DNA from: Salpingoeca rosetta
Lineage: Eukaryota; Protista; Choanoflagellata
Assembly (NCBI GenBank): GCA_033442325.1
Contig: JAWQFM010000013.1
Coordinates: 1,713,846-1,733,015 of the forward strand
DNA length: 19,170 nt
Direction of reading: 5' to 3'
The notes under the pieces: model-generated
What the model was told of the DNA's origin: nothing
The model's input: the letters and a program-made list of their open reading frames with translations, nothing else
Databases searched by the model: none
Part shown: one piece after another, positions 1 through 19,170 of the stretch
Numbering within the stretch: position 1 is the first letter of the stretch
Layout of the letters: each line of letters opens with the position of its first letter
Translations under genes and position numbers: made by a program

Positions 1-1420
1 GTGTTGTGCTTCAGCACCTTCGCCAACGCCACGGCGCCCTCATCGCCGATGGAATTGTCCCACAGGCTGTCAAGATGATGTGGTGGATGCCACACAGGGG
101 GATGATGCCACATGGGTGAGGAAGTGCGTGAGTGAGTGATGATGATTGCTGTGGATGGCAACACAGTCATCAATCCACACATGGGCACGTGATAAAGGTG
201 CAGCGGCAGTGACGCAGCATACATGTGCATGTGTGCGTGTACACACTCACCCGAGCAATGTCATGGTCGTGTTGTGCTTCAGCATCTCCGCCAACGCCAC
301 GGCGCCCTCAGGACCGATGGAGTTGTATTGCAGGCTGTCAAGATGATGTGGTGGATGCCACACAGGGGGATGATGCCACATGGGTGAGGAAGTGCGTGAG
401 TGAGTGATGATGATTGCTGTGGATGGCAACACAGTCATCAATCCACACATGGGCACGTAATAAGGTGCAACAGGCAGTGACGCAGCATACATGTACATGT
501 GTGCGTGTACACACTCACTCGAGCCATGTGAGGGCCGTGTTGTGCTTCAGCATCTCCGCCAACGCCACAGCGCCCTCAGGACCGATGGAGTTGTTCCACA
601 GGCTGTCAAGACGGTATGGTGGATGCAACATAGGGCGATGATGCCACATGGGTGAGAAAAGTAAGTGCGTGCGTGATGATGATTGCTGTGGGTGGCAACA
701 CAGTCATCAACCACACATGTGCACGTGATAAAGGTGCAACAGCAGTGACGCAGCATACATGTGCATGTATGCATGTCCACACTCACTTGAGTCCTGTGAG
801 GGTCGTGTTGTGCTTCAGCATCTCCGCCAACGCCACAGCGCCCTTATCGCCGATGGAATTGTTGTTCAGGCTGTCAAGACGGTATGGTGGATGCCACGCA
901 GACGGATGATGCCACATGGATGAGGAAGAGTGAGTGCGCGCGTGATGATGATTGTTGTGGGTGGCAACACAGTCGTTGCACCCCACCCCATCAACCACAC
1001 ATGTGCACGTGATAAGGTGCAACGGCAGTGACGCAGCATACATGTGCATGTGTGCGTGTGCACACTCACTAGAGTTCTTTGAGGGCCGTGTTGTGCTTCA
1101 GCATCTCCGCCAACGCCACGGCGCCCTGGTTGCCGATGGAATTGCCCTCCAGGCTGTCAAGATGGTATGATGCCACACAGGGGGGATGATGTCACATGGA
1201 TGAGGAAGAGTGAGCGCGTGCGTGATGATGATTGTTGTGCGTGGCAACACAGTCATCAATCCACACATGTGCACGTAATAAGGTGCAACAGGCAGTGACG
1301 CAGCATACATGTACATGTGTGCGTGTACACACTCACTCGAGCCATGTGAGGGCCGTGTTGTGCTTCAGCATCTCCGCCAACGCCACGGCGCCCTCAGGGC
1401 CGATGGAATTGTCCCACAGG
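1..1420. repeat. Tandem exon+intron repeat array, unit ~268 bp (84-nt LRR exon plus ~184-nt intron), more than 5 copies
   Basis: Exon acceptor ends lie at 66, 334, 602, 870, 1153 and 1420 (periods 268, 268, 268, 283, 267). The introns are homologous (e.g. ggcaacacagtcatcaa, gcagtgacgcagcatacatgt). The 283-bp unit carries a ~15-nt insertion (gttgcaccccacccc). Confidence 0.95.
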
Positions 1421-2115
1421 CTGTGCAGGCACACAAGAACCGCAGGGAGCGACGGTGAACACACGTCCAAACATGCGCAAGCAGGGGAGGAGAAAGGGGT
1501 GCAACATGCAACACCGCCACCCCAGTCAACCATGCATGTCACACGAAGCAGATTCATCATCACCACGCACTCGAGTTCTTTGAGGCAGGTGTTGTCCTTG
1601 ACCGCCTCGGCCACCGCACGCGCTCCTATGTCGCCGAGGCCAGAATTACCCAAGCTGTAATTCCAAATGGTGTGTGTCATGAAATGAGCAAGAAGACTGA
1701 GGATCGAGACAGAGCAAAACCATGAGGGTGCCAGTCCCAACCTGCCACAAACACACACACACTCTCTCTTTGTTGATGTGTCTAGGCGGTGCGAGGGGAC
1801 AGGACACGCACACGTAAACACCCAACAGCAAGCCACACCAAGCTCATTGCAACACAAGGACAAGCCAAGCAGAGAGAGAGAGGAGGGGGAGAATCAGCAC
1901 AAGCACAACCACAAGAAGTGTCCTTGTGGCCTAGTGTCCAACACATGCATGCATGTTCCAACACGTCGTTTTGGTTGCTTGTGCACTCACTTTATTCTCT
2001 CCCCACACGTGTTGTTGGCGATGGCTCTGATCTCTTCCTTCACCCCATCCTTCACCTTCGTCTGCGCCAGCAACGCCTCCACCTCCTCCCTCGCTCTCTT
2101 CTCTCCGCCGGACAT
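1..2115 (-). CDS. Leucine-rich repeat protein (ribonuclease-inhibitor/NLRC3-like 28-aa LRRs), spliced, continuing beyond the left window edge. Exons: 2115-1991, 1654-1571, 1420-1337, 1153-1070, 870-787, 602-519, 334-251, 66-<1
   Basis: ATG at 2115 in a gccATG context. All introns are GT-AG and phase 2, and every complete LRR exon is exactly 84 nt. The spliced translation is open: MSGGEKRAREEVEALLAQTKVKDGVKEEIRAIANNTCGERIN-LGNSGLGDIGARAVAEAVKDNTCLKELD-LWDNSIGPEGAVALAEMLKHNTALTWLD-LEGNSIGNQGAVALAEMLKHNTALKELY-LNNNSIGDKGAVALAEMLKHNTTLTGLN-LWNNSIGPEGAVALAEMLKHNTALTWLD-LQYNSIGPEGAVALAEMLKHNTTMTLLG-LWDNSIGDEGAVALAKVLKHN... This matches the LxLxxNxIGxxGAxALAxxLxxNxxL consensus. Confidence 0.92.
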
Positions 2116-6736: not shown

Positions 6737-7098
6737 TGTCAGCGGAAATTCCCGATGACATGTTTGTGTGTATGAGTGAGTGTGAACGAATGCGTTGTCT
6801 TGACGTGTGGGAACACCATGATTTCACCATGGTCTGACTTTGTGAAAGACCCTCTTTGTTTGTCCCTCTATCAGGTGATCTCCTGATACACAATGTGTGA
6901 ATGTACACGTGTCACTTTAATAGTGTATACGTGTACCCTCTTCCTCTATCATATGCGTGATATGTACTGCATGGTGTTCATTCTCTTCTGTCCCCGATTC
7001 CAACGACACCACTGCGTGGGTTGTCTACCAAGGTTTACTTCAGCTGTGAAAGCTCTCAATACAAGTCTCAGGGAAAACGCTGAGGAACAATCTTGTCA
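6737..7098 (+). repeat. 5' LTR (362 bp)
   Basis: tgtcagcggaaattccc...gaacaatcttgtca; no difference from 8694-9055 found by eye. Confidence 0.96.
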
Positions 7099-7113
7099 GA
7101 TTATGAGACCTGG
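7099..7113 (+). promoter_or_regulatory. Primer-binding site, half-tRNA type (complementary to a tRNA-Met anticodon arm); second copy at 7198-7212
   Basis: GATTATGAGACCTGG lies immediately after the LTR. Its reverse complement CCAGGT-CTCATAA-TC is a CAT-anticodon loop with stem, not a TGG-initiated 3'-CCA PBS. Confidence 0.75.
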
Positions 7114-7211
7114 CGGCGACACCAACTGCGAGCAACACTGAGGCCGAGACAGCATCGTGACCAGGAAGCACGAAAACGCTGAGGAACAATCTTGTCAGAT
7201 TATGAGACCTG

Positions 7212-8642
7212 GATCAGCACGACACCAGCACTTACTCCCCAACAGCAAGCAGATCAACGTTGCTTACCTTGATGGCGTCAACCACAGCTCCACTGATGGT
7301 GATGGACGTGACCACTGCGTTCCTTCACGCCGACCTGCCAAGAGATGTGCATGTGAAGATCAGAGGAGAGGTTTTCAGGTTGCACAAGGCCCTCTACGGC
7401 CTCAAGGACAGCCCACGTCTGTTCCACCAGCACATCCACTCCATCCTCACACGACTCAGCTGGCAAGCCACCATCACCGACCCTTGTCTCTACACCCGTC
7501 AACATCAGCAGCACGGACAAACGTACCTCATGGTGTATGTCGACGATCTTCTCTACGTGGGGGGTGGACAAAAAGAAGTCGTCGAGGAACTACGTCCACA
7601 CCTGCAGATTAAACACAAGCAAGGACAGCAGCATGACTACCTTGGCATTCGCATTACGCGCACAACAACATCAGCAGCAACCACGACTTCAACCACAACC
7701 ACCATTTCTCTTACGCCGTATCTATCAGCCATCGCCGGTATCGGGCCTTTCCGGGTGTCGACACCGATCACGATCGACCACGGCAGGCAGATACAGGGGG
7801 GTGGGAAAGAAGGAGCGATGGTGAGCGGTGGTGGACGCGCGGACAACAAGGAGCAGACACGTCAGCAACAGCTACCGCTGACCCAGCAGAAACAGCACAA
7901 GCACAGACTCAAGGAGTACCAGCAGGTGCTCGGCACGTTGACATACGCCGCCTCGACAGCACGCCCTGATCTAGCATACGCAGCGTCTGTGCTGGCAAGC
8001 AAAATAGGACACGTGAGCACACACGACGTGCAGATGGCACGCAGAGCACTGCAGTATGCGAAGAGCCACAACAACATCCTCACCACCACCGTCGAACACA
8101 CGACCGGTGCGGCTGCATGCGGTTATTACACGACAGCACAATTGTCTGACCTAGAAAAAGGTCAACAGTTTCCGACAGCACAAATTGTGACCTACGTCGA
8201 TGCCTCCTTTGCCATGGACGCGGGCCGGCGCTCGCGCTCCGGCATCGTCATCTGCGTCAACAACATGCCTGTGTATTGGCGCTCCAGCAAGCAGACGATC
8301 ACGGCACTCTCCGCAGCAGAAGCTGAATACTCTGCTATCACCGAGGGCATCAAGCACACCATTCACGTGAGAGACCAGCTTGACGAAATGATGATCAAGC
8401 ACAGCACTCCAGTCATCCTCACCGATTCGATGTCTGCCATACACATGGCAAACTCCGACAAGATTCAGGAACGCACCAAGCACTTGGGCATACGCATGCA
8501 GTTCACACGCGACCACGTACGGAAGCAGACCGTCGAGCTGCAGCACGTGCCCTCTGGTGACCAAGTCGCTGACATGCTGACCAAACCCTTGCACAAGGGT
8601 GCGTTCCACCGACTGGTGCAGAAGATTATGCATCACGAATGA
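7212..8642 (+). CDS. pol: Copia-type pol fragment: N-terminally truncated reverse transcriptase plus RNase H
   Basis: Open frame after TGA at 7203-7205. RT motifs TYSPTA, MDVTTAFLHADL, LHKALYGLKDSPR, DPCLY, VYVDDLL; connection region YQQVLGTLTYAASTARPDLAYA; RNase H YVDASFA, RSRSG, WRSSKQ, SAAEAEY, TDSMSAI, RTKHLGIR, DQVADMLTKPL. The upstream KARLVA motif is absent. First ATG at 7272. Confidence 0.93.
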   Translation, partial: DQHDTSTYSPTASRSTLLTLMASTTAPLMVMDVTTAFLHADLPRDVHVKIRGEVFRLHKALYGLKDSPRLFHQHIHSILTRLSWQATITDPCLYTRQHQQHGQTYLMVYVDDLLYVGGGQKEVVEELRPHLQIKHKQGQQHDYLGIRITRTTTSAATTTSTTTTISLTPYLSAIAGIGPFRVSTPITIDHGRQIQGGGKEGAMVSGGGRADNKEQTRQQQLPLTQQKQHKHRLKEYQQVLGTLTYAASTARPDLAYAASVLASKIGHVSTHDVQMARRALQYAKSHNNILTTTVEHTTGAAACGYYTTAQLSDLEKGQQFPTAQIVTYVDASFAMDAGRRSRSGIVICVNNMPVYWRSSKQTITALSAAEAEYSAITEGIKHTIHVRDQLDEMMIKHSTPVILTDSMSAIHMANSDKIQERTKHLGIRMQFTRDHVRKQTVELQHVPSGDQVADMLTKPLHKGAFHRLVQKIMHHE

Positions 8643-8684
8643 ACCAACCACCACGATCAAGATTCTCCCAAGGCGCATCCATTC

Positions 8685-8693
8685 AGGAGGGTG
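8685..8693 (+). promoter_or_regulatory. Polypurine tract
   Basis: aggagggtg directly abutting the 3' LTR. Confidence 0.8.
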
Positions 8694-9055
8694 TGTCAGC
8701 GGAAATTCCCGATGACATGTTTGTGTGTATGAGTGAGTGTGAACGAATGCGTTGTCTTGACGTGTGGGAACACCATGATTTCACCATGGTCTGACTTTGT
8801 GAAAGACCCTCTTTGTTTGTCCCTCTATCAGGTGATCTCCTGATACACAATGTGTGAATGTACACGTGTCACTTTAATAGTGTATACGTGTACCCTCTTC
8901 CTCTATCATATGCGTGATATGTACTGCATGGTGTTCATTCTCTTCTGTCCCCGATTCCAACGACACCACTGCGTGGGTTGTCTACCAAGGTTTACTTCAG
9001 CTGTGAAAGCTCTCAATACAAGTCTCAGGGAAAACGCTGAGGAACAATCTTGTCA
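8694..9055 (+). repeat. 3' LTR (362 bp)
   Basis: Same sequence as 6737-7098, followed by TSD aaatc. Confidence 0.96.
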
Positions 9056-9367: not shown

Positions 9368-10367
9368 ACGAAGCAGGCGTCACGTCAACGATCCCCAGGT
9401 GAGCCAACACACATCATGCCCACTGTTCCTTCCTCGACTTCTTCTTCTTCTTCTTGGGCACTATTCGTTCGCTCCATGCGTCACGCAACCAAGTACGTGA
9501 ACGTGGGACGCGGTGTCCTGTTTGTGGTGGCGGTGCTGTCGGTTGTTGCTGTTGCTGTCTTGTTGTGGGTGTGGGTGTGGACTCCCTTCTTTCCTTCTTC
9601 TTGTGGCACAAGGATGTGTGCAGGGGGCTGTGGGTCTGCTGAAAGTGGTGGTTTCGTCGTCGTCAGGTCGTCGTTGTTGTGCTTGGCTAACGTGAACATG
9701 TGTGCTGTTCTCTTGTGGTTGGACAAGGCAGTGGCCTGCAGAAACAATGCCCCTTAGAGTGCACTGGCAACACGTGCCGCTGACATACGCACACCACAAG
9801 GCAAGCGTGTTATTCACGGCCACCTGCGAGGTGGGTGCAATCACGCCTCCGCTCTGTGTGTGTTGTGCGTGTGTGTGTGTGTGTGTATCAGTGCACGGTG
9901 GTGATCCGATTTCCAAACCACAGTCCCTGCTGTCACTGCTGCTGTCTTGCTGCTGCTGGTGCTGCTGCTGTTGGCACGTGTGTTCTCACGGATGCATCGT
10001 CTCTTCCTCCCACGCAAACAACAAACAGACAGGAATCCGCAAGTGAGAGTGGCGGAGACCAAGGCACCAGCAATACAGAAGGCCACCTTTGAGTGGGACG
10101 CACCTCCAGAGCGGTACCGGAGCGAGCAATCACAGCATTTGCGCTGACATCGGTCAGTCTTCTCTCGTGGTCACACATCATTCATCCCCCAGCTTGCAAT
10201 CAAGTCAGTTCACATGGCATACACGCTGTAGGTGCTCATCACCTGCCCCATGCACACGTGGTTTTCACGCACACACCCCACAGCAGCCCGCTTGCGTGGC
10301 ATCATCTCGCTGGACATGAGTGTTGGGGATGATGATGGCATGCCCACGTCGCAGCATGACAGTGAGC

Positions 10368-10370
<3 letters not shown>

Positions 10371-10433
<63 letters not shown>
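10371..10433. repeat. (GT)n microsatellite, intronic
   Basis: Direct reading; similar tracts at 11059-11111 and 12954-13012. Confidence 0.9.
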
Positions 10434-10435
<2 letters not shown>

Positions 10436-11054
10436 TCTCATTACGCTCGGCAACCGTGTGATGACGGCTTATCACTCCTGCGCACATTCCCTCGCTCACT
10501 GCAACACCCATCTCGCCACCGTTAACGACCAGGTTGCCATCCACTGGATGCCCTTGATTGCGTCGATGGAGCAGAGTGTTGGTGACATTGGCAAGGTGCT
10601 GCTCATGGCGGGACAGAGCGACTGCTTTCAAAGGTATGCGCACACTGTATGTGTAAGCGTGTGTGCATATGTGACGTCGACGTGTTTATTCTGCCATGCG
10701 TCTGCTGTCTGTTATTCGTGTGCCATCGTTTGATCTTGAGCTACGATGTATTGCCCTAATCTCTGTTCCTCGTGCGTGTTTGGGCCACAGAGTAGGCCTT
10801 CAGCTGAAGAGAGGAAGGGGGACGCTGCTCCGGCACAAGGATGATGGTGACATGAGGTGCAACCACCAAATTGTGTTGTTGTTGCGGGTGCATTGCCGCC
10901 GACGCTGCTGCTGCTGCTGCTGCTGCTGGTGTGTACCTGCACACACTGAACCACTCATCACTCGCTATCGTCTTGCAATCCTTCTGTGCGGCTCTCTTCA
11001 CGGCTTCGTCTCTACAGCTTTATGTCTGCCAAAGAGAATGAACTCTTTGACACA

Positions 11055-11114
<60 letters not shown>

Positions 11115-12951
11115 CGGTTCGTTGCAGATATCTCCCAACACTCCTCCCATCCCCTTTCATCCGCGCGCCTCACCACACAACAAACGCACCCATCGTCTCG
11201 ACCACAACCACCACTGTTAACAGGACGCACTGCACCGAGATGCCGCTGCACTATCGCACTGCCAATGGCGGTCCTGATGTCAGCGATGACCGCACGGCAT
11301 ATCCATCGATCCTCGCACGTGCCCATCGTTCAAGGTGAAGACCCACCAACACAGCAACAGCAACAGCAACGGCGTGGAATGGAGTGCAATGGAAGCATGA
11401 TGACCTCACACTCTCTGTTTGCGTGTGTGTTATGATTGCGTGTTCATGCGTGCGTGCATCTATGGCAGGTGTACGTGTACCGTCTGACTGCTGACGAAGA
11501 GGCCGTCCCTGCCAGCCATCTACCGCGCCATCCGAACCGCCATCCTTGACGGCCGTACAGCACCGATGACCTGTCCAAGGCTTACCTCTTCGTTCCAAGC
11601 ACAGACGTGTCGTGCTGGTGTGAAGGTGTGTGTGTGTATGTGTGTATGTGTGTGATTGTGTGTGTATGTGTGTGTGTGTGTGTGTGTCGCGTCGGTGCAG
11701 ATGCGCGGGCTTCCACAGCAGTCACCATCCCCGCCACCACCTCACAACTGTGCGTGCGTGCTTGTGACTGAAAGATTTCATGCACGGCACGTACTCTGGC
11801 AACATTGAGTCGATTCATCCCGTGAGCGCAGCCATCGAGCGCAATCTCTCCAGCTGAGGTGGTGGTTTGTTGTTGCTTGTGGTGCTTGTGGTGCTGGTGG
11901 TCCGTGTGGATTGTGGTATCTTGCGTGTGAGAGGACCTGCGCTCATGGATGTCTTCCAAACACACACGCTCACATGCTCACATGTGTTGATACATGCCAG
12001 ACTTGCGTATTGGAACGAGGGCCGCTATCATATCCTGTTTTGAGTACAGTGACGCACCATGTCTCCCCTGGGATGCAGAACACGGCATTCTTGCAAAAGT
12101 ACAATGTGCGTGTGTGTGTGTGTTGGAACATGACTGTGCGTGCCTGCGCTCACCATCGACGACTGCTGTTGCTTACACTTCACCAATGCCGCCTTGTTTC
12201 TCATCACCACCTGCATCAGGTTGGCCTAAGCGAATTCCACCACCGTGACGGCCTCGATGTGTCCATGCCACTCTTCTCCATGGTGACATTCATTCATTCA
12301 AACCGGAGCAGCGACGCTTTCCGCCCGCACAAACAGGAAATACCTCGTCACCTTCAGGTGTGTGCATGTGTTGCCCGTGTTGTGACGTGGTGCGATGTGA
12401 GGTGTGATGTTCACTGCTGCTGCGAGGTTTTGAGGGGTTGGTGTGGCTCACTGCACCACCATTCGCGCTGCAACCTCACTTCAAACCTGTTGTGGTGCCG
12501 CTGCTTGACGTGTGTCTTCTTTCGCTGTGGTGCAGAGACACCAACCAAGTCTGCTCGCTCTGATGCCATGCGCAACCACCTCCCCAAGCTTCACAACCGC
12601 AGGTGTGTTGTGCTACGCGTGCGAGTGTTGTGTGTTATCGTGTGTTTTGTGTGGCCCGTGCGTTGCCTCGGGGTCAGCTGGTTTTGGTGCTGTGTGTGTG
12701 CCTGTCTGGATCCACCTCACACACGCACACACATCGTCTCTTTGTACGTTTGCTTGTGCGTTTGCAGGGACATTGTGTTGGTGTGCGCGTGCCGGTGGTT
12801 TGGCGAAGCGCGAATGGGCCGAGAGGGGAAGGTTGGATATGACCCCTCGTGTAAGCAGGCAGAAGAAGAGTTCAACAAGTACACGTGCACGGATCTGGCG
12901 CTGAAGACCAAGTTTGGGCTCATCGTGGATGGATTTGGCTACCACTCCTTC

Positions 12952-13013
<62 letters not shown>

Positions 13014-13430
13014 TTGTGTGTTGCAGACGATTTCGGTCCTGTTTGTGCTCTTACCCACCTTCCACCTCCCGCCACCCCCTTTCATGCCTCATAGATCATG
13101 GCTGCGGGTGCCATACCCGTCATTGTCGTCGATCACTACGTGCTGGTGCGTATGGATGGATTATATTGTGTGTGTGTGTGTGTGTGTGTGTGTACCCCTC
13201 CCGTCGCTCATGGTGCTGTGATGTGATGGGTTGGTGTTTGCTTTTTGCGCGCTTGCAGCCCTACCAGGACCTGCTGGACTGGGAGACGTTCAGCACTCGC
13301 ATTCCCCGAGCACAGGCTCCTCGAGGTGTGGTGACAGATCGGTGACATGGGGATGTGAAGTTATGCTTGAGGGGTGCTTTGGTTTTTGATGGGGATTGTG
13401 TTTGGTGATGGCTTGCATGTCACGTTGCTT

Positions 13431-13445
13431 ACACACACACACACA

Positions 13446-13525
<80 letters not shown>
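13431..13525. repeat. (CA)n microsatellite, intronic
   Basis: Direct reading. Confidence 0.9.
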
Positions 13526-13526
<1 letters not shown>

Positions 13527-13829
13527 CTGTGTTCAGCTTCCGATAATCCTGCGGTCGATCCCTGATGAGGTGGTGGAGATGATGCATAGACGCGTTGCGT
13601 TTGTGTTTGAGGAGTTCTTCAAGCCAAGTGCACACAGGTGAGGGAGCGAGTCATTGGGACAAGGAGTTGTCGGGTGAGTGTGGGGACGTTTGTGGTGTGG
13701 TGTGTGCGTTGCTCACTTGTTCTCGTGTCCGTTCAACCACCCTCACCATCTGCCAACTCGTGTGCTATTTGCTACTGTCAGCACTGGAGTCTGCCAGGAT
13801 CAACCTGTTCAGCGGCGACAACGCGTGGC

Positions 13830-13866
<37 letters not shown>

Positions 13867-15935
13867 GACGTGCGTGTTCTCTTCTCCATCCATCCACCCA
13901 CACGCCATCACCACCTCCTCATGTTCTTGTGTGTTTGCTCACCTCCTTCCCTCTCCCTCCTCAACACCATCACCACCACCCTCCACACGTGCTCGTTTCC
14001 CCTTCCTTCTTTCTGCTGTCGCCACACATAGGGCCCTTGAGCCAGCAGCTGTCACCCCTAACCACCACTGCTCTGGCGGGATGAACAGACGGGCGCTGCC
14101 ATGTGATGACCATCCAGCCACGCTTGTGCGATTGCGGAAGCAGCAACACCAACTCACACCGCAAAGCAAGCAAGCGATGAACAACGTGAGTGCATCATTG
14201 CACGTGTGTGTGTGTGTGTATGATGCGCACATCACCAGTGTGCGTGTTTTGTGGTCGCTGTCTCTGCTGCTCCTGCCTCCCCTTGTTGTCCCACATCAAT
14301 GTGCATGCATGTGTGTGGTGTGGCTGCCTGTTTTGCCTTGCTTGCTGCGCTGTCTCATTCGTCGTTCTCACACAAAACTGGCTGCACACCTGCACATTCT
14401 CCAGCTTGCAGTCACTGCTCGTCTTTCCCTCTCTTTCACGCCCTCCCTGACGGCCATCACAACAACAACAGCAGCAGCAGCAGCCAACACACCCTCCACC
14501 GCCGATGCAGCAGCAGCAGAGGATGCACCACCACCACCACTTGCTGCTGAACACATCCAACCAACCAACCAACCAGGCAACCAACCAAGCCATCGCCCAC
14601 GGGAGCTGGCTGCCTGCTGCTGGTAACAGGTGGCGACAGCACAAGTTGCATTTTCGGTTGGCAGCAGCAGCAGAGGTGAGGGCGAGAAGAGGAGGGAAAA
14701 CGGAGGGGAGATGCGTTGGCTGGATGGATGGATGAATGAGGTGGGGGTGGGGGATGCTGGGTGAGTGTGGTGTGGTGTGGTGTGGTGTGGCTGGTGACAG
14801 AGGACGATGGTGGTGGTGTGAGGAAGAGGGATGGATGGATGGATGGGGTGCAGCATGTCTTGTTCCTCCCCTTTTGTTTTCTATTGTCTCTCTCTCTTCC
14901 CTTTCTTCTTCACACACATGCACGCACAACACCAGCAGTGGCAGCAGCAGTGTGGCTGCGCACATATCCATGCTCCCTCTTTCCCTCTCACTCACTCACC
15001 GTGCTGGTACTCGCACACAAGCACTCTTACAGGCGATGCACACTTATAGGCAGGATGAGGGAAATGTCGAGGATACTTCCCACGCGTGCCAGGTGCACTC
15101 GCCTCACACATGGTATGTGGGTGGTGATGAGTGGTTGGTTGGTTGTGATAGAGTGTGGGGATGGGGTTGTGGTGATGGGGTGAAGCGAACAAGAGGAAGA
15201 AGGGTTGATGGGGGATGATGATCACGCACCGACACACACACGCACGCGCACACGTGGTGTGTGTGATGTCAATCACACTTTCTGCTGTGCTGACGTGATG
15301 GCTTGCTCTGTGCCTGTTGTGTTCTGTTCCCATCCATGGTGCCTGCAACCACACACACACACACACATGCACATAAACACAGGTGGTGAGGTACCAGCAC
15401 ACATCACATGGAAGGGGGCTCCCATGCCGGCTGCTGCTGCTACGACTCCCCCGATTCGGCTGCCGTTGCTGTGCTCATGCAGTGTTCCCACATGTGAGCA
15501 AGGTGAGCCATCATGGATGCTTTGGTTGGCACATGACGCATGTGTTGGTGCTGTTGCTGCGTGTGCTTGGTGTTGCTGCTGTGGGTGTCTCGTGCACCAG
15601 TGTAGCTGTGCAGCTCACATGTCATGTACGTGTGTGTATGCTTGTGGCCGCAGGGGGGCGACTGCCTGAGGATCGTTGGAGGATGATGGGCGGTGCACAC
15701 ATGATGGGTTGGGAGCAGCAGCTGTGGACACACACGTCCATGGTCATGGGGGGCACATCCAACCACAGCGACGCAGTCATGCGCAGGTGTGCGTGTGTGT
15801 GGTGGGGCGAGGAGGAGGAAAGCAGAGGAGGGACAGGAAGGTGAACACGCCTGCTGTGCTCACATGCCATACCCGTGCCTCGTGTGTGATGATGTCGTTG
15901 TGTCTTGTCGTTGTGTGTTGGTTGCATGGGCACCA

Positions 15936-17323
15936 GGGCCACATCAGAGGAGGGGAAAGCAGCCGCCATGAATGCCACATCCTCAACCCTTCCCCATTTC
16001 GCTCTCCTTTCTCTCCTCTTCCACCTAAGCTCCGCTCTCACCACCGCCATCACCGCCATTGCCATCGACCGCACAGCCGCCATCACACTCCGGCCGACAC
16101 CAGCCCCAATCTGGCGTGAGGCAGACCTTGCACATGTCACTCGCTCTCATCAAGAGGTGAGCAATGTGTGTGTGTGTGCGTGTGGATGTGTGTCAATGCT
16201 TGTGGTTGGATGGGGATGGCGTGTGGTTAATGGTGCTTCGCTGTCAACCTCACCCCCCCCTGCATTCTCTCCCATCTTGTGTCTGTGCACACGCATGATC
16301 TCAGCGTTGAGGAGGCGCATGAAGCGGTGGAACCAACGACGATGACGATGACGAGTGATGCAGGTGAGAGGCCGACTGAGATGTGTGTGTGTGTATGGTT
16401 GACACGCTGTGTTCCCTTCTTCGCCTCCCTCTTTCCTTGTCTGTTCTGTCCACTCATGTGTCTTTTGTTCCCCCTTTTTTTTGATTGATTTGGACACAAG
16501 GACATGCATTCTGACTCCATCCAACCGACCAACCAAACAGCCGAGCGAGCGAGCAAATGGACACAACGTGGCAAGGGGCCGTTTTGTTTTCACCGTTTCC
16601 ACCATCAACACCAACAGCAACAGCTGATGGCTGGCTGCATTTTGGATGAATTGGCCCTCTGCCTCTCGTCCATCTCCTGCTCCTCCTCGTCGTCATTGGT
16701 CACCAACAGCAGCGACTGCGACCATGGATGTGGAGGTGAGATGAATGGGTGGGGGTGTTGGTGACGTGGGTGGCGTGTGATGTGTTGGGTGTGAACACCA
16801 GCATGTGTGTGTGCGTGTGATTGTGAGGTGTAGGTTGGATGTCGTTGGGTCTGTTGGTGGTGGCAATGGGCGTTGTTGTCGTTGACAACCTGATTCTGTG
16901 ACAACTCACCTCTTTCTCCACGCACACACACAGGGTGTGATGTGCGTCGATGTGCCGTTGCCTCGGGTGACGATGACGATGGTGGTGGTGAGTGATTTGT
17001 GGTGGATGTACGTGGCGCACGCACACGCATGTGCAGATGTGATGCTTGTAGTGGTGGTGGTGGTGGTGGGGGTGTGGGGATGTGACATGTGCGTGCACAG
17101 GTGGTGATGTGGGTGATGTGAATGAGGCACAAGGAGGTGGATGTGGTTTGTTTCTGCCATGCTGGCTCACTTCGTGGTGTGATTCTTGCTGATTTTGTTG
17201 TTTGTGCTTGCGCATGTGTGCATGTGTGTGATTTACACAGGACGGTGGCCGTTCTCTTCCCAAGCCCTCATGACACGAGCAGGGCGATACACGCACACAC
17301 ATGTGCAAGAAAAAACGGCACCA
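15936..17323 (+). other. Possible degenerate exon remnants of an unidentified gene
   Basis: Several AG...GTGAG-bounded segments ending at ~16156, ~16363, ~16735 and ~17323. One reads MNATSSTLPHFALLSLLFHLSSA (signal-peptide-like). No recognisable family or consistent frame. Confidence 0.2.
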
Positions 17324-17354
17324 GGTGAGACGTTGGGGCTGTGTGTGTGTGTGT

Positions 17355-17393
<39 letters not shown>

Positions 17394-19170
17394 GTGATGG
17401 GGTGGTAGTACACATTCGTACGCACATACGCACGCACGTACACGCATGTACACATGCATGCCAACACCAGAGCAGTCATTGGCTGTGGGGTGGTTGCACT
17501 GACGTGCGTCTCACATGAATCAATCACACAACTCAAATGTGCGTGTGTGCGTGTGCGTGGCTGCAGACGGACGTGTGCGGGTTTCCCCAACCGAAATTTC
17601 CTTCCCCCTTTCCAGCCAATCGTCTTTGCTCTGTGTCGTCATCATCATCAGCCTTCCCCATGTGATGTGGAGCTGTTGAGGCGTGATTGAGACTGCGGCC
17701 AACACAGGTATTTCAGCAGTGGCGGATGTGGTGGATGTGGTGTGCCTGCTTGCCTGCTTGTTGGGTGCTTGCTTCGTCGTTCTTGTGTGTATCTGGTTCA
17801 CCCGCCCACAACATGCTGCATATTCCCATGCGTGGTCCCTTGTGTCCCTCCTTTCCTGTCCTCACCATCACCGGTCATTGTTCGTCTTTGGTTGGTTTCT
17901 TCTTGCCTCACAGGCACGCAGGGCAAGCAGGCATGCAAGCTTGTGCTGCTGGTGGTTGTGATGATGGCCGTGCGCGCGCCTGTGCGCTGTGCACCGTGTT
18001 TGGGCTGCACCGATGCGGACAAGGAAGGACACGGCCCGTGCCCACCACTCTTCCCCCTTCATCTCCTCTTTCTGCTCCATCAGCGATGACGATGGTGGCC
18101 GTGGCATGTGATTGCGGTTCCCTTTTTCTGGCTTCGCTGTGGCACATTGGCTGGCTGGCTGGCTGCATCAAGCACAGGTGAGGATGACCGTTGGCGGCTG
18201 GTTGCTTGGTTGGTTGGGTTGTGTCGAGTGGTGGGAGCAGGGGGGGAGGGAAGTGACACGGTGATGGTGATGGTGGTGGTGGTGATGGGGCGACGTGGAA
18301 ATGCAGAGCAGAGGAGGGAGAGGGAGAGGGAAATGATTTGAGGGCGATGATGTTGGTTGGGGGATGAGGGGTGCGTGTGCACATGCACGTGATGTCGTGT
18401 GGTGGTAATATCACATGACAATGACACACATATCAGTGGCTCATTCCTTTTGCTTGCACCTGCGCACCTGTTTGTGATTGTGATGATGACTGCAGCAGGC
18501 AACACACGGCGGTTGATGCTGGATTGGATTGGCTGGGGTTGACTGGCCATCGTGTCGTGTCGCCCATTTCTCTCTCTTCGTTGCTCATCTCAACTGGGAA
18601 CACACACAGCGATGTGTGTATGTGTGCGTGTACATGCGTGTGCGTCGCCATCAACCACGCCGACAGCGACACGATGCACGAGGTGAGGGCACGCAATGGT
18701 GTGCGTGTGTTTGGTGGAAGAGGGATGAGGGAAAGTTGGGAGGAAGGCGTTCATCATGGCCATCATCACCACTACCACGGCTGTGCACCTGGTCATGTGA
18801 CCGTGCATATGGGGGGATGGAGATGAGGGGAGAGATGTTGTCGTTGTGGTTATGGTGGTTGTGTTTTGCATTGTTATGTATGCGTGTGCATGGTGCACCG
18901 TCTCACTCTGCAATGCCATGTCTGACTGTGTGTGTGTGTGTGTGACTGCAGATGTGCGTGTGCGCATATGTCGGGCAGATGCGTTGATCGACGACGAGGT
19001 GTGTGTGATTGCGTGTGTGGTTGACCTTTGTGTCCTTGTGCCATCACACACAACGCACAACACCAAGCACATCATCATCATTCCACCTCGTGTGTAGTTG
19101 TTGTTCACTCATGCATGGCGTGCTCACATCCACCCCCTCCCCTTGCTTCTTCTCCTTCCTCCTCTTCTCT

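Follow-up and report, generated by a model that had tools for sequence, protein, structure and literature searches.

A chromosome-end array of one-repeat exons in Salpingoeca rosetta, probably part of a family of intracellular LRR-Roc-COR-TIR receptors varied on the ligand-binding face

At the end of contig C13 in the 55.4-Mb genome of the choanoflagellate Salpingoeca rosetta, a gene opens with a tandem series of short exons, each encoding a single leucine-rich repeat (LRR), which are almost the same in one segment and different in another. What kind of protein carries such repeats, and what has made them vary where they do? The stretch of DNA analyzed here, referred to as the window, comprises the final 19,170 bases of the contig; the 5' end of the gene lies on the minus strand of its first 2,115 bases and the gene exits the window leftwards. 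A preliminary reading of the letters alone (the sequence-only reading) had proposed an intracellular recognition protein whose repeat cassettes are diversified by recombination and whose binding face is under diversifying selection. Our analysis leads us to consider it probable that the gene belongs to a germline family of intracellular LRR-Roc-COR-TIR receptors, in which the arrays are diversified by subtelomeric recombination and selection favors diversity of the binding face.

The array repeat consists of 28 residues with the pattern LxxLxLxxNxIGxxGAxxLAxxLxxN, which is of the ribonuclease-inhibitor/NOD type (Pfam LRR_6); positions L0, N3, I5, G6, G9, A10, L13, L17, N20 and L26 are invariant in all array exons (28 codons each). 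Diversity was measured in a family sample drawn from 12 loci, with 48 array introns and 64 intact array exons, of which 59 are distinct. The largest differences fall at the x positions around the beta strand: first and second positions of codons 1, 2, 24 and 25 and of the split codon 27 show a mean pairwise difference of 0.5-0.75 per site, and those positions of codons 4, 7, 8, 22 and 23 that carry amino-acid changes show 0.3-0.5. Pooled over all x codons, first and second positions differ at 0.449 per site, synonymous third positions embedded in the variable patches at 0.22, array introns at 0.142-0.144 and third positions of helix codons 11-21 at 0.011. Variation is therefore far from evenly spread, with x sites at 3.2 times the introns (bootstrap over units, 2.4-4.1), about 40-fold over the helix synonymous sites and 2.0-fold (1.7-2.4) over the synonymous sites of the same patches. 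Diversity is focused on about ten codons, in the beta strand and the loop that follows it, at 3-6 times the neutral level. In the window alone, helix third positions differ at 0.0, introns at 0.091 and x-codon first and second positions at 0.40 per site, which bears out the almost invariant helix, similar introns and variable x residues described in the sequence-only reading. The helix segment (nucleotides 34-66 of each 84-nt exon, for example window 1355-1387) deserves mention in its own right, as it is almost invariant even synonymously (0.011, where the adjoining introns have 0.14); candidate causes are RNA-level constraint, an exonic splicing enhancer and a conversion hot spot.

Estimates of selection, made with the Nei-Gojobori method, separate the same two classes of codon. 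Scaffold codons have a synonymous distance (dS) of 0.159, against an intron Jukes-Cantor distance of 0.160, and a ratio of non-synonymous to synonymous distance (dN/dS) of 0.11. At the x codons dN is 0.57 over nine codons and 0.98 over the four core codons, and the within-codon dN/dS is 1.4-2.0; these are pairwise values, and they agree with the excess of non-synonymous change at beta-strand x positions that had been predicted. Pairs of units whose introns are less than 2% different still show 15.7% difference at the flanking x sites. The residues that predominate where variability is greatest, at four positions of the repeat, are Trp, Tyr, Asp, Asn, Glu, Arg and Gly. We looked for an even spread of variation, a low dN/dS at the x positions and a missing paralogous family, and found none of the three.

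Concerted evolution without positive selection might also generate this picture. The repeats would be old and their exposed surface unconstrained, and conversion would homogenize helix and introns while stalling at divergent patches, leaving these hypervariable by contrast only. Helix synonymous diversity far below that of the introns is a mark of homogenization or of nucleotide-level constraint, the raised diversity of patch-embedded synonymous sites implies that patch genealogies are deeper than flank genealogies, and sequence identity breaks sharply at the patch borders. Conversion as the whole story is, however, hard to reconcile with the 2.0-fold excess of x first and second positions over synonymous sites within the same patches, or with the within-codon dN/dS. 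The number of patch haplotypes given below points to ongoing change, and the four positions of highest variability are rich in Trp, Tyr, Asp, Asn, Glu and Arg, as known binding surfaces are. On balance we regard concerted evolution alone as an unlikely account, and selection for a varied binding face as the better one.

How the units have been rearranged can be read from their introns. Array intron I1 (1154-1336) is a mosaic, similar to I4 in its first third (66/67) and to I2 (871-1069; 199 nt, including a 14-nt insertion) in its last third, while I4 (335-518) equals I5 (67-250) over the last two thirds (117/117) and matches it at 58/67 over the first. Across loci, introns with 0/184 to 0/194 differences lie beside exon ends that differ at up to nine of their last 15 bases, and the alternative patches at these exon ends are found again in other members of the family. 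When the 5' patch, helix, 3' patch and introns are compared, their pairwise distances show correlations of about zero, save that between an intron and the 5' patch of the downstream exon (0.23-0.29). The mosaic introns and the sharp breaks in identity indicate that units are reshuffled by recombination or conversion; they are mosaics at a scale of less than 100 nt, which fits unequal crossover together with short-tract conversion. The 64 units show 45 and 40 distinct patch haplotypes, so new variants arise too. A small frozen pool of patch variants was considered as a source of the diversity, and these same counts rule it out. Two decayed units are present in paralogues, on contig C15 near position 13,966 and at the C14 locus; one exon has lost 14 nt of its helix, the other unit is truncated and fused to unrelated sequence, and either would break the reading frame unless skipped. 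Diversification by recombination, as first proposed, thus stands on an evolutionary time scale, through the mosaic introns and identity breaks; somatic diversification does not form part of what these data show.

The 5' end of the gene occupies window 1-2115, and all of its features lie on the minus strand. Exon 1 (1991-2115; 125 nt, or 41 codons and two bases, with the ATG at 2113-2115) encodes a hydrophilic N-terminus of 41 residues without a hydrophobic signal-like stretch, in agreement with the earlier statement that the protein lacks a signal peptide, and an N-terminal motif of this exon is also found in the paralogue protein P0001. It is followed by intron 1 (1655-1990; 336 nt, GT..AG, phase 2) and by exon 2 (1571-1654; 84 nt), a divergent LRR with the helix ARAVAEAVKDNT, which is kept as the first LRR exon in paralogues. 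Intron 2 (1421-1570; 150 nt) has no relation to the array introns. The tandem array proper then runs through exons A1 (1337-1420), A2 (1070-1153), A3 (787-870), A4 (519-602) and A5 (251-334) to A6, which is partial at the window edge (1-66; helix AKVLKHNT); the remaining array intron, I3, spans 603-786. Tandem Repeats Finder describes the unit of exon and ~184-nt intron as a 268-bp period present in 5.3 copies, with 87% matches over positions 1-1424. The sequence-only reading had counted six complete exons and a partial seventh: the 84-nt, phase-2 exons with AG/GT borders are all there, but that at 1571-1654 falls outside the tandem array, given its unrelated 150-nt intron and its different helix, so that the array within the window comprises five complete exons and one partial. 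The junction residues listed in that reading (KELD-LWDN, TWLD-LEGN, KELY-LNNN, TGLN-LWNN, TWLD-LQYN and TLLG-LWDN) were all reproduced from our reading of the exons.

Each complete LRR exon is 84 nt long with AG/GT flanks; its first base completes a codon begun in the exon before it, and its last two bases open the codon that the following exon completes. The introns are consequently all in phase 2, so that the gain, loss or skipping of any exon leaves the frame intact. The base with which an array exon starts, and which completes the split codon, is C in 64 of 64 cases (in the window at 1420, 1153, 870, 602, 334 and 66), so the junction residue is fixed by the upstream exon alone and any order of exons keeps both frame and residue. 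Symmetric exons of this kind (phase 2-2, 84 nt) would suit a programmed or somatic system, which rearranges cassettes or splices them alternatively inside one clone so that receptors differ from cell to cell, as in the lamprey variable lymphocyte receptors (VLRs) or in exon skipping of NLRP3; in human NLRs, skipping of exons in exon-modular LRRs is documented (PMC6642158). The germline gene is nevertheless complete and spliceable, with canonical splice sites at every unit, and the window was seen to contain no incomplete acceptor locus, no intron-less donor cassettes and no associated deaminase or recombinase. We therefore attach very little credence to somatic diversification, and continue with germline recombination between copies.

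The intron position also bears on how the repeat is recognized and folded. Single window exons match LRR_6 only at E 0.04-0.07 (0.04 for A1 alone; A2 was likewise searched alone against Pfam) and only over model positions 10-24, the repeat being interrupted by the intron; at 27 residues they are below the length needed for normal Pfam thresholds, and the public paralogues P0001 and P0002 were used to represent the spliced product. The LRR of a paralogue has its best match among solved structures in NOD2 (5irm, E 6e-31; also 5irl), followed by LRRC34, NLRP3 and ribonuclease inhibitor. A single-sequence AlphaFold2 model of P0001, which is of low confidence (mean predicted local distance difference test score, pLDDT, of 45.9) and was used for secondary structure only, places strands at repeat positions 23-1 and helices at 7-19, with pLDDT values there of ~60-78. 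With strands modeled at these positions the phase-2 intron would fall inside the beta strand, dividing it as LxxLx/LxxN, where the slash marks the intron. The exposure of the x residues on the concave face rests on established LRR structures, by analogy with which they would line the binding surface.

What lies behind the repeats was sought in the 10 kb directly left of the window (L031; L031:1-1100 corresponds to C13:1703846-1704950). The array continues there: no fewer than three further complete exons follow, one of which lies between two stretches of N, and one exon is cut by an N stretch; the gene would have roughly 16 units if the N stretches are array too. In six fetched paralogous loci the array closes with a different LRR exon after a 436-nt intron. 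Pfam searches of the open pieces left of the window gave, on the same strand, an ankyrin match (Ank, E 2e-10) and a Roc match of 28.1 bits (cut-off 27) at L031:5200-5643 on the minus strand, with a GxxxxGKT-type P-loop. C-terminal of Roc, at L031:2597-4621 on the minus strand, are COR-A (69.7 bits, cut-off 35.3) and COR-B (22.1 bits, under its cut-off of 27), and a downstream piece gave TIR_2 at 27.6 bits, slightly under the cut-off of 28, and a weak match to SAM_2 (E 0.024). The downstream coding pieces scanned gave no Pfam match to NACHT or NB-ARC; Roc and COR were found instead. In the TIR piece a glutamate follows a Cys-containing motif and is conserved with the paralogue in the region where the catalytic residue would be expected; it is a candidate for that residue. 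A word search with the COR piece returned S. rosetta proteins as its closest relatives (PTSG_13066 at 92%, others at 63-73%). The joining of these domains is seen in the two public paralogues, P0001 combining LRR_6 (60.8 bits, cut-off 23.4) with Roc and COR, and P0002 combining Roc (57.4 bits) with COR, TIR and SAM_2.

The gene product would thus be a ROCO GTPase that carries LRRs and ankyrin at its sensor end and TIR, with a probable SAM domain, at its output end. The advice to extend leftwards for a C-terminal effector domain was well founded, and the analogy drawn to the ROCO LRR-GTPases of Ectocarpus proved apt, as the Roc and COR-A matches place the predicted protein among the ROCO GTPases themselves. 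From strand, spacing and the architecture of the paralogues, we infer that array and effector domains belong to one transcript. Two neighboring observations may be added. Another LRR-encoding gene, with a different repeat subtype, begins right downstream of the TIR-SAM end (L031:1-1100, minus strand). COR-domain proteins of 42-53% identity (P0004, P0005 and P0007) were found in ENA and Logan assemblies; these may be the same family in other choanoflagellates or in environmental relatives.

A ROCO protein need not serve in immunity. The family could act in signaling or as a scaffold, in the cytoskeleton, vesicle traffic or cell-cell recognition during colony formation or mating, its variability being neutral subtelomeric turnover or a means of recognizing self or a partner. 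Characterized ROCO proteins (LRRK2 and the Dictyostelium Roco kinases) work in trafficking and cytoskeletal control, and the two decayed units in paralogues speak for birth-and-death turnover. The output domain, on the other hand, is a TIR with SAM, the NAD-cleaving death or immune module of the SARM1 and plant TNL type; the LRR is nearest to NOD2 and NLRP3; and variation concentrated on the binding face is a hallmark of receptors that follow changing ligands. We consider a non-immune role of this sort improbable in comparison with that of an immune-like receptor.

The number and placement of the copies show where reshuffling between loci may take place. A search with one 268-bp unit found 129 matches in ~30 loci of the same genome, which provides the large paralogous family that the proposal called for; the 12 sampled loci carry from two to at least nine units each. 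Fourteen loci lie within 85 kb of a contig's first base, a zone that makes up ~10% of the genome; distances were counted from the first base, and among right-end arrays for C13 only, where the window's locus is 17.5 kb from the contig end. The polarity of the arrays is constant: those at low coordinates lie on the plus strand and those at high coordinates on the minus strand, with transcription always directed away from the contig end and the LRR array outermost.

Two larger blocks in the window share this setting. The subtelomeric block at 14600-19170 (plus strand, 4.6 kb) recurs at ~30 contig ends with 83-86% identity and always points towards the contig end, its low-coordinate copies being on the minus strand and its high-coordinate copies on the plus strand; it is present at both ends of several contigs, and on C5 a copy lies ~6.5 kb from a tract of telomere repeats. 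The chromosome-end block at 9600-13600 (plus strand) recurs at ~15 contig ends with 85-92% identity, and the ends that share it are mostly those with an LRR-ROCO array 8-10 kb further in. By these patterns whole end segments, beyond the gene alone, have been copied between chromosomes, and the genes form a subtelomeric family within a common chromosome-end architecture that is no accident of assembly breaks. An assembly artefact was considered for the array itself and is ruled out, as its units differ from one another and recur as distinct paralogues on many contigs. Two other features of the window were noted. Identical 300-nt direct repeats (6737-7036 and 8694-8993) enclose an open frame with RVT_2 and RNase H-like matches, and the element at 6737-8993 is by these features a truncated copia-type long terminal repeat (LTR) retrotransposon; its identical LTRs suggest recent insertion or conversion. 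Between 2600 and 17400 there are ~20 (AC)n/(GT)n microsatellites of 13-50 repeats in 15 kb, which seed many short spurious matches in whole-genome DNA searches.

We propose the following mechanism for the predicted receptor family. A unit of 268 bp, made up of an 84-nt exon encoding one 28-residue repeat and a ~184-nt intron, has been duplicated in tandem, and unequal crossover and short-tract gene conversion reshuffle units within and between copies, the near-invariant helix segment and the similar introns supplying the homology. Selection would maintain or drive the diversity of the ligand-binding concave face. Binding of a ligand to the LRR would release the Roc-COR switch, and the TIR domain, with SAM-assisted oligomerization, would cleave NAD+ or make signals of the cyclic ADP-ribose (cADPR) type; these signaling steps are predicted from the domain set and from the roles of TIR, SAM and Roc-COR elsewhere. 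The family would in this way act as a germline-encoded repertoire of innate-immune-like receptors, a role that we suggest by analogy.

Several points weigh against this interpretation. The sample covers 12 of the ~30 loci. The selection estimates are pairwise and not those of a recombination-aware site model; they handle related, recombining units as if these were independent, and differences at the x codons are nearly saturated. Were conversion to stall at divergent patches, x sites could stand out more strongly from introns without any positive selection. Two N stretches (C13:1712665-1713845 and 1711693-1712382) lie between the window and the Roc-COR-TIR exons, and it is owing to them that a single transcript is only inferred. 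The assembly is short of telomere-to-telomere, and there is no telomere repeat at the window's contig end.

Taken together, the results bear on the inheritance of the first animals, for which choanoflagellates, whose known immune-like toolkit is thin, are the reference point. The literature searched contained no paper on this LRR-ROCO family in S. rosetta or in choanoflagellates, and none specific to an 84-bp NLRC3 exon. Plant NLRs, fish NLRCs and brown-algal ROCOs are known examples of a logic of expanded, diversifying intracellular receptors; the family would show that this logic exists in the unicellular sister group of animals too, and is in this respect highly interesting for the question of how animal innate immunity arose. 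S. rosetta can be cultured and genetically manipulated, and would be a tractable system for two questions: in what way recombination at subtelomeres generates diversity among receptors, and whether a TIR enzyme can be triggered by Roc-COR in place of a STAND ATPase switch. A bolder view, which we offer as speculation and think rather doubtful, is that the ~30 chromosome-end copies form a contingency-type receptor system, in which frequent ectopic subtelomeric recombination, possibly with exon skipping, re-assorts cassettes so that clonal lineages differ in repertoire, and that the 84-nt ribonuclease-inhibitor-type cassette is the ancestral module of animal NOD/NLRC proteins, a sensor module swapped between Roc-COR and NACHT scaffolds. 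If this were true, the sensor module of animal NLRs would be older than animals.

Among known systems, the Plasmodium var, trypanosome VSG and yeast adhesin genes are subtelomeric contingency families. The S. rosetta genes resemble them as a multicopy family beside shared, oriented subtelomeric blocks, with mosaic members that imply ectopic recombination, but whereas those families encode surface antigens or adhesins used for evasion or adhesion, the S. rosetta product is a predicted intracellular receptor-like protein. With the lamprey VLRs the family has in common LRR cassettes that are recombined and a concave face that is varied. The VLRs, however, are assembled somatically, from intron-less flanking cassettes brought into an incomplete germline gene; the S. 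rosetta loci are complete, their cassettes are spliced exons, and recombination is seen between germline copies only.

The domain set invites comparison with plant TIR-NB-LRR proteins, which likewise combine a repeat sensor, a nucleotide-binding switch and a TIR domain, and with animal SARM1, in which SAM stands beside TIR. The S. rosetta protein differs in its order (LRR-Ank-Roc-COR-TIR-SAM) and in a switch that is a Ras-like GTPase rather than a STAND ATPase, and its NADase role is predicted. A TIR domain of S. rosetta, possibly from another family, is reported to make cADPR (preprint, bioRxiv 10.64898/2026.04.20.719644). The repeats themselves are closest to those of vertebrate NOD/NLRC proteins. 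Human NOD and NLRC genes are reported to give each 28-aa LRR an exon of its own, bordered within the beta sheet (PMC6642158), and the S. rosetta array shares the class and length of the repeat, the rule of one 28-aa repeat per exon and, as modeled, the border in the beta strand; its switch, in the pieces scanned, is Roc-COR and not NACHT, and its output is TIR-SAM and not CARD or PYD.

The nearest described system is that of the LRR-ROCO genes of the brown algae Ectocarpus and Saccharina, whose LRR exons are 72 bp long and in phase 2 and whose concave face is under positive selection (PMC3341825, PMC11378527). Common to the two are Roc-COR behind the LRR, as predicted for the S. rosetta gene, one LRR per exon with all introns in phase 2, exon number and order that vary among paralogues, decayed units (non-coding in Ectocarpus) and a non-synonymous excess at beta-strand positions, for which the S. 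rosetta values are pairwise. The S. rosetta genes differ in an 84-nt exon and a 28-residue LRR_6 repeat of the ribonuclease-inhibitor/NOD type, as against 72 nt and 24 residues; in the addition of ankyrin, TIR and SAM to what is plain LRR-Roc-COR in the algae; in their placement at chromosome ends with fixed polarity, where the algal genes lie in internal clusters; and in belonging to the lineage that is the sister group of animals. The S. rosetta family thus works like the brown-algal one, but its exon, repeat and domain features place it outside that clade.

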